This document shows, piece by piece, positions 11,791-13,978 of a stretch of DNA of 60,856 bases; the first letter of the stretch is position 1; each line of letters opens with the position of its first letter. The translations under genes and the position numbers were made by a program. Below the pieces are notes generated by a model that did not search any database, had not been told where the DNA came from, and saw only the letters and a program-made list of their open reading frames with translations. The stretch comes from Ylistrum balloti (taxonomy: Eukaryota), in contig NW_026781950.1 of assembly GCF_031769215.1 (NCBI RefSeq), positions 1,984,001-2,044,856 of the forward strand, written 5' to 3'.

Positions 11791-13978
11791 TGCATCATAC
11801 AGCTGTTTCGTCCTTTCTAGGACTCGTCGGTGATGATGCATCATACAGCTGTTTCGTCCTTCTAGGACTCGTCGGTGATGATGCATCATACAGCTGTTTC
11901 GTCCTTCTAGGACTCGTCGGTGATGATGCATCATACAGCTGTTTCGTCCTTCTAGGACTCGTCGGTGATGATGCATCATACAGCTGTTTCGTCCTTTCTA
12001 GGACTCGTCGGTGATGATGCATCATACAGCTGTTTCGTCCTTTCTAGGACTCGTCAGTGATGATGCATCATACAGCTGTTTCGTCCTTTCTAGGACTCGT
12101 CGGTGATGATGCATCATACAGCTGTTTCGTCCTTCTAGGACTCGTCGGTGATGATGCATCATACAGCTGTTTCGTCCTTTCTAGGACTCGTCGGTGATGA
12201 TGCATCATACAGCTGTTTCGTCCTTCTAGGACTCGTCGGTGATGATGCATCATACAGCTGTTTCGTCCTTCTAGGACTCGTCGGTGATGATGCATCATAC
12301 AGCTGTTTCGTCCTTCTAGGACTCGTCGGTGATGATGCATCATACAGCTGTTTCGTCCTTCTAGGACTCGTCGGTGATGATGCATCATACAGCTGTTTCG
12401 TCCTTCTAGGACTCGTCGGTGATGATGCATCATACAGCTGTTTCGTCCTTTCTAGGACTCGTCAGTGATGATGCATCATACAGCTGTTTCGTCCTTCTAG
12501 GACTCGTCGGTGATGATGCATCATACAGCTGTTTCGTCCTTCTAGGACTCGTCGGTGATGATGCATCATACGCTGTTTCGTCCGTCTAGGACTCGTCGGT
12601 GATGACTCGACTCGTCAGTGATGCTGCATCATACAGCTGTTTCGTCCTCTAGGACTCGTCAGTGATGTTGCATCATACAGCTGTTTCGTCCTCTAGGACT
12701 CGTCAGTGATGCTACATCATACAGCTGTTTCGTCCTCTAGGACTCGTCAGTGATGTTGCATCATACAGCTGTTTCGTCCTCTAGGACTCGTCGGTGATGA
12801 TGCATCATACAGCTGTTTCGTCCTTCTAGGACTCGTCGGTGATGATGCATCATACAGCTGTTTCGTCCTTCTAGGACTCGTCAGTGATGATGCATCATAC
12901 AGCTGTTTCGTCCTTTCTAGGACTCGTCGGTGATGATGCATCATACAGCTGTTTCGTCCTTCTAGGACTCGTCGGTGATGATGCATCATACAGCTGTTTC
13001 GTCCTTCTAGGACTCGTCGGTGATGATGCATCATACAGCTGTTTCGTCCTTTCTAGGACTCGTCGGTGATGATGCATCATACAGCTGTTTCGTCCTTCTC
13101 GGACTCGTCGGTGATGATGCATCATACAGCTGTTTCGTCCTTTCTAGGACTCGTCGGTGATGATGCATCATACAGCTGTTTCGTCCTTCTCGGACTCGTC
13201 GGTGATGATGCATCATACAGCTGTTTCGTCCTTTCTAGGACTCGTCGGTGATGATGCATCATACAGCTGTTTCGTCCTTCTCGGACTCGTCAGTGATGAT
13301 GCATCATACAGCTGTTTCGTCCTTCTCGGACTCGTCAGTGATGATGCATCATACAGCTGTTTCGTCCTTCTAGGACTCGTCAGTGATGATGCATCATACA
13401 GCTGTTTCGTCCTTCTAGGACTCGTCGGTGATGATGCATCATACAGCTGTTTCGTCCTTCTAGGACTCGTCGGTGATGATGCATCATACAGCTGTTTCGT
13501 CCTTTCTAGGACTCGTCGGTGATGATGCATCATACAGTTGTTTCGTCCTTCTAGGACTTGTCGGTGATGATGCATCATACAGCTGTTTCGTCCTTTCTAG
13601 GACTCGTCGGTGATGATGCATCATACAGCTGTTTCGTCCTTTCTAGGACTCGTCGGTGATGATGCATCATACAGCTGTTTCGTCCTTTCTAGGACTCGTC
13701 GGTGATGATGCATCATACAGCTGTTTCGTCCTTCTAGGACTCGTCGGTGATGATGCATCATACAGCTGTTTCGTCCTTCTAGGACTCGTCGGTGATGATG
13801 CATCATACAGTTGTTTCGTCCTTCTAGAACCCATCAATGATGCTACATCATACATCTGTGTCATCCTCCTTGGACTAGTCAGTGTTGCTAAATCATACAG
13901 CTGTTTCGTCCTTCTAGGACTGGTCAGTCATGCTGCATCATACAACTGTTTCGTCCTTCTATGACTCATCAGTCATAC
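11791..13978 (-). repeat. Tandem array of ~48 units of 44-46 bp (consensus 45 bp)
   Basis: + strand unit tgcatcatacagctgtttcgtccttctaggactcgtc(g/a)gtgatga counted unit by unit from 11791. One partial unit at ~12606-12624; the last four units (13799-13978) are degenerate. Confidence 0.98.
11791..13978 (-). ncRNA. Head-to-tail minimal hammerhead ribozymes, one per repeat unit
   Basis: Minus-strand unit reads CAUCA-C(U/C)GACGA-GUCC-UAGAA-GGAC-GAA-ACAGCUGU-A|UGAUG. It has the hammerhead core CUGANGA..GAAA, a 4-bp stem II closed by G10.1-C11.1, a palindromic stem III, a GUA (NUH) cleavage triplet and stem I CAUCA/UGAUG. Structure is read from sequence; activity and transcription are untested. Confidence 0.88.

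Follow-up and report, generated by a model that had tools for sequence, protein, structure and literature searches.

The hammerhead array

The stretch of DNA analysed here, referred to below as the window, comprises 60,856 nucleotides (nt) of contig NW_026781950.1 from Ylistrum balloti (assembly GCF_031769215.1, positions 1,984,001 to 2,044,856), and it contains on its minus strand, at positions 11791–13978, a tandem array of hammerhead ribozyme units. About 47 to 48 units of 44–46 nt make up this array, as judged from Tandem Repeats Finder (TRF), Rfam, a unit table and strict motif counts. TRF delimits a 45-bp repeat at 11791–13967 with 47.8 copies and 88% matches, and a three-unit period of 136 bp fits the array slightly better than the single-unit period (91% versus 88%). 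The guanine plus cytosine (GC) content of the array is 48%, compared with 34.5% for the window as a whole. An earlier, sequence-only reading of this DNA had proposed about 48 head-to-tail hammerhead units of this size, and the TRF copy number and the minus-strand Rfam matches bear it out.

Read on the minus strand from the cleavage site, a unit consists of UGAUG, a 3-nt linker, CAUCA, C(U/C)GACGAG, UCC, a loop of 4–6 nt, GGA, CGAA, the palindrome ACAGCUGU and a final A. Stem I is formed by UGAUG and CAUCA, stem II by GUCC and GGAC, and stem III by ACAGCUGU, and the cleavage triplet GUA precedes UGAUG in nearly all entries of the unit table. The dissection into three stems and a GUA site given by the sequence-only reading agrees with the Rfam alignments and with the predicted three-way-junction fold. 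Its further claim that every unit is a hammerhead without any spacer also stands, the only nucleotides outside the motif being the 3 nt per unit that act as loop 1 or linker.

Two minus-strand segments score above the Rfam gathering threshold for Hammerhead_3 (RF00008), namely 12435–12486 with 50.7 bits and 12722–12771 with 50.1 bits, and one does so for Hammerhead_1 (RF00163, like RF00008 a model of the hammerhead ribozyme, Rfam clan CL00010), at 12670–12712 with 34.0 bits; a search of this strand with both models had been proposed in the sequence-only reading, and both models matched. Only these three window units pass a gathering threshold, and at E ≤ 1 essentially all units match hammerhead models, on the minus strand only. 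For the 52-nt span that runs from one palindrome to the next, the three-way junction is the minimum-energy structure (-16.6 kcal/mol, z -3.1). In the Rfam alignments and in this fold, the array units have three helices around the core together with an NUH cleavage triplet, and by its sequence the motif is a metazoan type-I hammerhead with a palindromic helix III.

Because no spacer separates the units, there are two candidate cores for each cleavage site, and either of them could serve it. In a type-I reading the upstream core would act on the site, whereas in a type-III reading the downstream core would do so, with two neighbouring palindromes pairing as an 8-bp helix III. When an RNA of three units is folded, the active junction is predicted in alternate units only, and the intervening unit forms a competing extended hairpin.

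The sequence-only reading had written the core as C(U/C)GA, and while both forms are indeed present, it had not weighed the difference between them. Strict motif matching of the array finds 9 fully canonical units with a CUGA core and 33 units that are canonical except for CCGA in place of CUGA (the U4C change); the CUGANGA...GAA core with its A15.1–U16.1 pair is complete in the former and carries U4C in the latter, and its state differs from unit to unit. The CCGA units score 41–45 bits and the CUGA units 47–51 bits in Rfam, against a gathering threshold of 48.5, and this single core change keeps most units below that threshold. Because mutations of the CUGA U-turn gave low activity in a comprehensive mutagenesis of a hammerhead (PMC9901934), we would expect the CCGA units to be strongly impaired in catalysis. 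The uniform 45-nt cleavage ladder foreseen by the sequence-only reading is unlikely, given that CCGA cores make up about three quarters of the total.

Variants within the array occur in contiguous blocks. A run of 44-nt units extends over 12644–12819, GAGAA and UAGAAA loops alternate across 13092–13273, and higher-order repeats of two to three units are present. Neighbouring units are the most alike, the mean edit distance between units rising from 1.30 at lag 1 to 1.9 at lag 7. A single rearranged unit of 64 nt lies at 12580–12643, and three to four degenerate units lie at 13818–13978, at the edge of the array that adjoins the head sequence described below.

The carrier element in the window and in the genome

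The array lies inside a larger element whose parts can be recognized on both sides of it. Directly after the last hammerhead, on the minus strand at 11712–11790, is a 3' tail of about 79 nt ending in TTTTGTACAATC, which was defined by comparison of loci and corresponds to positions 274–399 of a full monomer found at locus L042; this tail would sit 3' of the last cleavage site. The first unit is immediately preceded by a head of about 200 nt (13979–14178, minus strand) that ends in CCATTAG and was identified by comparison of flanks and by its match to the L042 monomer. In fuller copies of the element the head is about 270 nt long. The tail of a preceding partial monomer lies at 14179–14262 on the same strand, as read from the sequence and from a chained alignment that starts inside this previous tail, and because it continues straight into the head we read the window insertion as a partial tandem of more than one monomer. 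Next to it, at 14263–14312 (minus strand), is what may be left, after heavy deletion, of the head end and hammerhead of the preceding monomer (...GACGACTGTTCATTAGAAGGAGATGCA), assigned with low confidence by eye against the single-copy form and with an approximate 5' limit.

A second copy of the element in the window, truncated at its 5' end, has one type-I hammerhead and the tail and lies on the plus strand at 41093–41282 (blastn of L042 monomer positions 202–398, 74% identity). The core of this hammerhead is CUGACAAG, in which G8 is changed to A, and we expect it to be inactive; its helix I contains two G-U wobbles. This copy shows the unexpanded state of the element.

The genome search covered the 648.5-Mb assembly of 1372 contigs. 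With a 271-bp repeat query we found at least 167 matches on more than 40 contigs, which supplies a lower bound for the genome-wide count that the sequence-only reading had suggested making, and 20 other array loci (L016–L035) were cut out for comparison. First-look candidates, by which we mean unrefined genome-wide matches to the head or the tail query, numbered at least 3778 for the head and 851 for the tail alone. At nearly all of the 20 other loci the tail ending in TTTTGTACAATC follows the array in the hammerhead sense, and the head precedes the array wherever homology to it is detectable, in identical phase. We also examined the number of units in eleven copies that had been picked by the tail alone. 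Most of these have one unit (L040, L041, L042, L045 and L046) or two (L037), and only L044 and L047, that is 2 of the 11, have 9–16 units. In its single-copy form, represented by L041, L042, L045, L046 and window positions 41093–41282, the element contains a complete type-I hammerhead with a 6-bp helix I (GCAUCA/UGAUGC), a 4-bp helix II and a helix III made of an A-U pair and the palindrome CAGCUG.

Counted between the ends of two successive tails, the full monomer at L042 has 399 nt and 38% GC. Copies share a constant 3' end, and their 5' starts are scattered over monomer positions 2–298. Tail-to-head continuity, indicating partial tandems, was seen at L024, L039, L042 and L043 as well as in the window; among the loci examined there were only such partial tandems and no full multimers of the monomer of about 400 nt. 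When the 20 nt flanking the copies on each side were compared, no clear target-site duplication emerged, a result that we do not take as absence of one. The fixed 3' end, the variable 5' truncation and the partial tandems together make up a retroposon-like pattern, in which the element resembles a non-LTR (non-long-terminal-repeat) retrozyme or a Penelope pseudo-LTR. A public DNA run that is independent of the assembly was used for a comparison of the array edge and flank with its contigs only. In these contigs, the loose ends beside hammerhead units converge on the tail and head sequences of the array, and the summed word depth of the unit, which is not a copy number, lies orders of magnitude above the depth of about 8.5x for the unique flank.

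On this evidence the carrier appears to be a dispersed, non-autonomous retrozyme-like element, and probably a non-long-terminal-repeat (non-LTR) retrozyme of the bivalve kind, whose monomer of about 400 nt consists of the head, one type-I hammerhead and a tail of about 80 nt. Satellites of bivalves are often carried by elements of the Helitron/Helentron type. Such a carrier was considered for this array and dropped, since the copies have a fixed 3' end and a variably truncated 5' end, form partial tandems running from tail to head, and contain a hammerhead. The suggestion in the sequence-only reading that the array might be a satellite standing alone, or an autonomous and ultra-minimal retrozyme, does not hold up against the head and tail around it, which point to internal expansion of the single hammerhead of the element.

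Growth and homogenisation of the arrays

In order to compare arrays we used 23 of them, namely those at L016–L035, L044 and L047 and the array in the window. The number of units per locus in the family runs from 1 to more than 170. The largest array examined, L023 (G000:C564:720400-729000), spans at least 7.9 kb and extends beyond the retrieved stretch; the canonical CUGA core is found in 146 of its 166 units, and its sequence makes it the strongest candidate for an array with active hammerheads. The consensus unit carries a lesion of the core or the cleavage site in 9 of the 23 arrays. U4C is the consensus in five arrays (the window array, L016, L017, L024 and L027), L018 and L019 have a G at the cleavage position H17, and the other consensus lesions are A13G in L027, A14U in L029 and A6G in L017. 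Each locus has its own private dominant linker and loop haplotype. Common to all arrays are the 45-nt period and the junction, which reads UGAUG, 3 nt and CAUCA, the 3 nt being the last bases of the head. The arrays thus resemble minisatellites in their locus-specific copy number, local homogenisation, higher-order repeats and closest likeness between neighbours.

These observations are best accounted for, and we think with good probability, by a DNA-level minisatellite expansion of the ribozyme module inside a retrozyme-like element. The unexpanded hammerhead, with a helix III of 1–2 bp and CAGCUG, would need a partner copy in order to form a stable extended helix III. The founding 45-nt duplication would have comprised 42 nt of hammerhead and 3 nt of head, and since all arrays share the 45-nt period and the junction, their sequences indicate that it happened once and was then inherited through transposition. 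Copies with at least two units would then have gained and lost units at their own locus through DNA-level processes, either unequal exchange or replication slippage, of which variant blocks, higher-order repeats and similarity that decays with distance are the usual signs. In the window a variant with a CCGA core and a CAU linker would have swept through most of the 48 units. Amplification does not appear to require an active ribozyme, because the consensus carries a lesion in 9 of 23 arrays and the array in the window has 33 CCGA units against 9 CUGA units; arrays fixed for inactivating changes argue that growth is independent of cleavage and of tiny RNA circles. Were the minus strand transcribed, adjacent units could complete each other through the 8-bp helix III, and cutting would be efficient only at the 9–10 CUGA cores among about 47, which would give mixed multiples of 45 nt.

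A separate observation concerns the direction of the changes that have spread. AT-to-GC transitions at a frequency of at least 0.3 within arrays account for 15 of 57 events, compared with 18 of 220 for other changes (Fisher p = 0.0008; p = 0.012 when the recurrent U4C is counted once). Possible reasons for this excess are gene conversion with a GC bias in the course of homogenisation, a shared subfamily, or selection in favour of inactive cores.

Several points weigh against this explanation of the arrays by expansion at the DNA level. In this ribozyme U4C may leave weak activity, as is sometimes kept by natural core variants (PMC3088659). Most arrays elsewhere, for example L023, keep canonical cores, and this could reflect either youth or selection. 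Transcripts may have a role in array growth, and template switching during reverse transcription could change the repeat number, also independently of cleavage. Such a contribution is conceivable because the founding duplication was inherited through transposition, and we regard template switching during reverse transcription as a reasonable minor contributor.

A stronger form of this idea is that the arrays grow mainly during retrotransposition, when the reverse transcriptase slips or switches template between palindrome-rich units, and that later change at the DNA level is minor. The period and junction common to all loci imply that multi-unit templates were transposed, the element has the fixed 3' end and variable 5' truncation of a retroposon, and a private haplotype at each locus would be expected if one template variant were copied many times. 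What this explanation does not provide is the succession of duplications, after the variants had arisen, that nested variant blocks, higher-order repeats and distance decay need; the pattern in the window is the classical signature of unequal exchange and not that of a single copying event. We therefore consider growth mainly by retrotransposition to be rather unlikely, although it is the alternative that survives best.

It could also be that a multi-unit array benefits its carrier, with hammerheads in cis supplying the dimer partner and so ensuring 3' processing just upstream of the tail. Hammerheads of this type are reported to cleave poorly as monomers and well as dimers (PMC4209133), dimeric constructs are on record from axolotl (PMC7229834), two-unit copies exist (L037), and folding across two units gives the type-III form as the structure of minimum energy. 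Two units would suffice for this purpose, however, which leaves 48 or more than 170 unexplained, and the homogenisation of inactive variants in many arrays as well as the single unit found in most tail-sampled copies speak against it, making a benefit of this kind improbable as the cause of the arrays. We give a similarly small chance to the proposal that arrays with intact cores, such as L023, are transcribed, cut to RNAs of 45 or 90 nt with 5'-OH and cyclic-phosphate ends, and circularised by the tRNA ligase RtcB. If this were true, no smaller natural circular RNAs derived from ribozymes would be known than these circles, which could act as templates or decoys for the reverse transcriptase of the element, and the CCGA-rich array in the window would be a silenced or decayed member.

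About as improbable is the functional ultra-minimal retrozyme or ribozyme satellite, in which RNAs of about 45 nt (5'-OH, 2',3'-cyclic phosphate) would be closed by RtcB and the arrays might be made by rolling-circle reverse transcription of the circles. In its favour, every unit is a hammerhead without spacer, neighbouring units complete a stable type-III fold, larger retrozyme RNAs of molluscs are known to circularise (PMC7229834) and most arrays elsewhere keep canonical cores. Against it, the arrays are always in phase within an element that has a head and a tail, and both of their ends fall inside a unit when counted from the cleavage site, which is what an internal duplication would produce. 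CCGA cores make up about three quarters of the window units, lesions that include the non-cleavable G17 are homogenised in 9 of 23 arrays, and a three-unit RNA takes the active fold in alternate units only. On this indirect evidence a self-propagating 45-nt ribozyme replicon is unlikely.

Known hammerhead repeats and the surroundings of the array

Metazoan non-LTR retrozymes are about 300 bp long with a GC content below 45%, and in the mussel Mytilus galloprovincialis they measure 350–390 bp (PMC7229834, Cervera & de la Pena 2020). The carrier shares with them a type-I hammerhead, a short palindromic helix III, a low-GC (38%) monomer of about 400 nt, and copies that are dispersed and in part tandem, their matches numbering in the thousands per genome. 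Canonical metazoan hammerheads have a helix I of about 6 bp, a helix II of 4 bp and a helix III of 1–2 bp with a palindromic loop, and they work as dimers (PMC4209133). Whereas non-LTR retrozymes repeat the whole monomer, and published monomers of hammerhead repeats are 150–450 bp (PMC7229834), in the array it is the 45-nt ribozyme module alone that recurs, within a single monomer. Retrozymes of this class are also expressed as monomeric linear and circular RNAs, whereas the element described here was seen in genomic DNA, in partial tandems.

It has recently been argued that non-LTR retrozymes derive from the pseudo-LTRs of Penelope-like elements (PLEs) (bioRxiv 10.64898/2026.07.22.740005). 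Like the hammerheads of Penelope pseudo-LTRs, that of the carrier sits close to the 3' end, with a short tail beyond it, copies show partial tandems and 5' truncation, and the palindromic helix III implies dimeric action. The hammerhead of the carrier, with a 4-bp helix II and a 6-bp helix I, is of the canonical form, unlike the minimal hammerhead ribozyme ('min-HHR') of many PLEs, which has a helix II of 7–8 bp (PMC4209133). Elsewhere in the assembly, GIY-YIG matches were found in open frames of 755 amino acids at G000:C422:240415-261997, where there are five at a spacing of 5.36 kb, and at C129:50248-67783. These frames look like tandem Penelope-like elements and are thus a candidate autonomous partner of the hammerhead element.

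Classical hammerhead satellites such as newt satellite 2 (about 330 bp), Sm-alpha of Schistosoma and pDo500 of Dolichopoda resemble the array in being tandem DNA repeats with type-I hammerheads and double-hammerhead action (PMC3088659, PMC7229834), but their monomers are hundreds of bp long with one ribozyme each, while here the 45-bp monomer is the ribozyme alone. In a model of minisatellites born within transposons, a tandem duplication is followed by expansion through unequal crossover (cited in the discussion of bioRxiv 10.64898/2026.07.22.740005). The array agrees with such minisatellites in the duplication of an internal segment, the locus-specific copy numbers, the local homogenisation and the higher-order repeats, and it differs from them in general in that the amplified segment is a complete catalytic RNA motif. 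What is unusual about the array is its repeat unit, a monomer that is only the ribozyme. The sequence-only reading knew of no such array, and we likewise found no description of a hammerhead array with a ribozyme-only monomer in the open-access literature that was searched.

It is evident from the array that a repeat bearing a ribozyme can be as small as the hammerhead itself, and the dimer partner for a weak helix III is built into the array. The family as a whole is a natural series from 1 to more than 170 units with core mutations specific to each locus, and it would lend itself to tests of dimer-dependent cleavage and of a role of ribozyme activity in the spread of retrozymes. For genome annotation, Rfam hammerhead matches of this kind mark a minisatellite of a mobile element and not individual functional ribozyme genes.

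The open reading frames (ORFs) that adjoin the array have no Pfam match, and the nearest recognizable gene, at 21.6–23.2 kb on the minus strand, is NCU-G1-like, so that the array looks intergenic. The ORF and Pfam context in the window gives no sign that the array regulates a host gene. Two exons of the NCU-G1 gene, which encodes a lysosomal glycoprotein resembling GLMP, are recognizable at 21657–23179 on the minus strand (Pfam PF15065, E = 2e-20 and 4e-18). TRF finds further tandem arrays at 5740–6626 (period 37, 24 copies), 17834–18969 (period 27, 42 copies) and 50397–51643 (period 156, 8 copies), and the 27-bp array overlaps a minus-strand ORF of 226 amino acids without a Pfam match. On the plus strand at 54072–56075 is an intronless ORF of 667 amino acids with a RING finger, two B-box-like zinc fingers and a coiled-coil-like region, encoding a TRIM-like protein.

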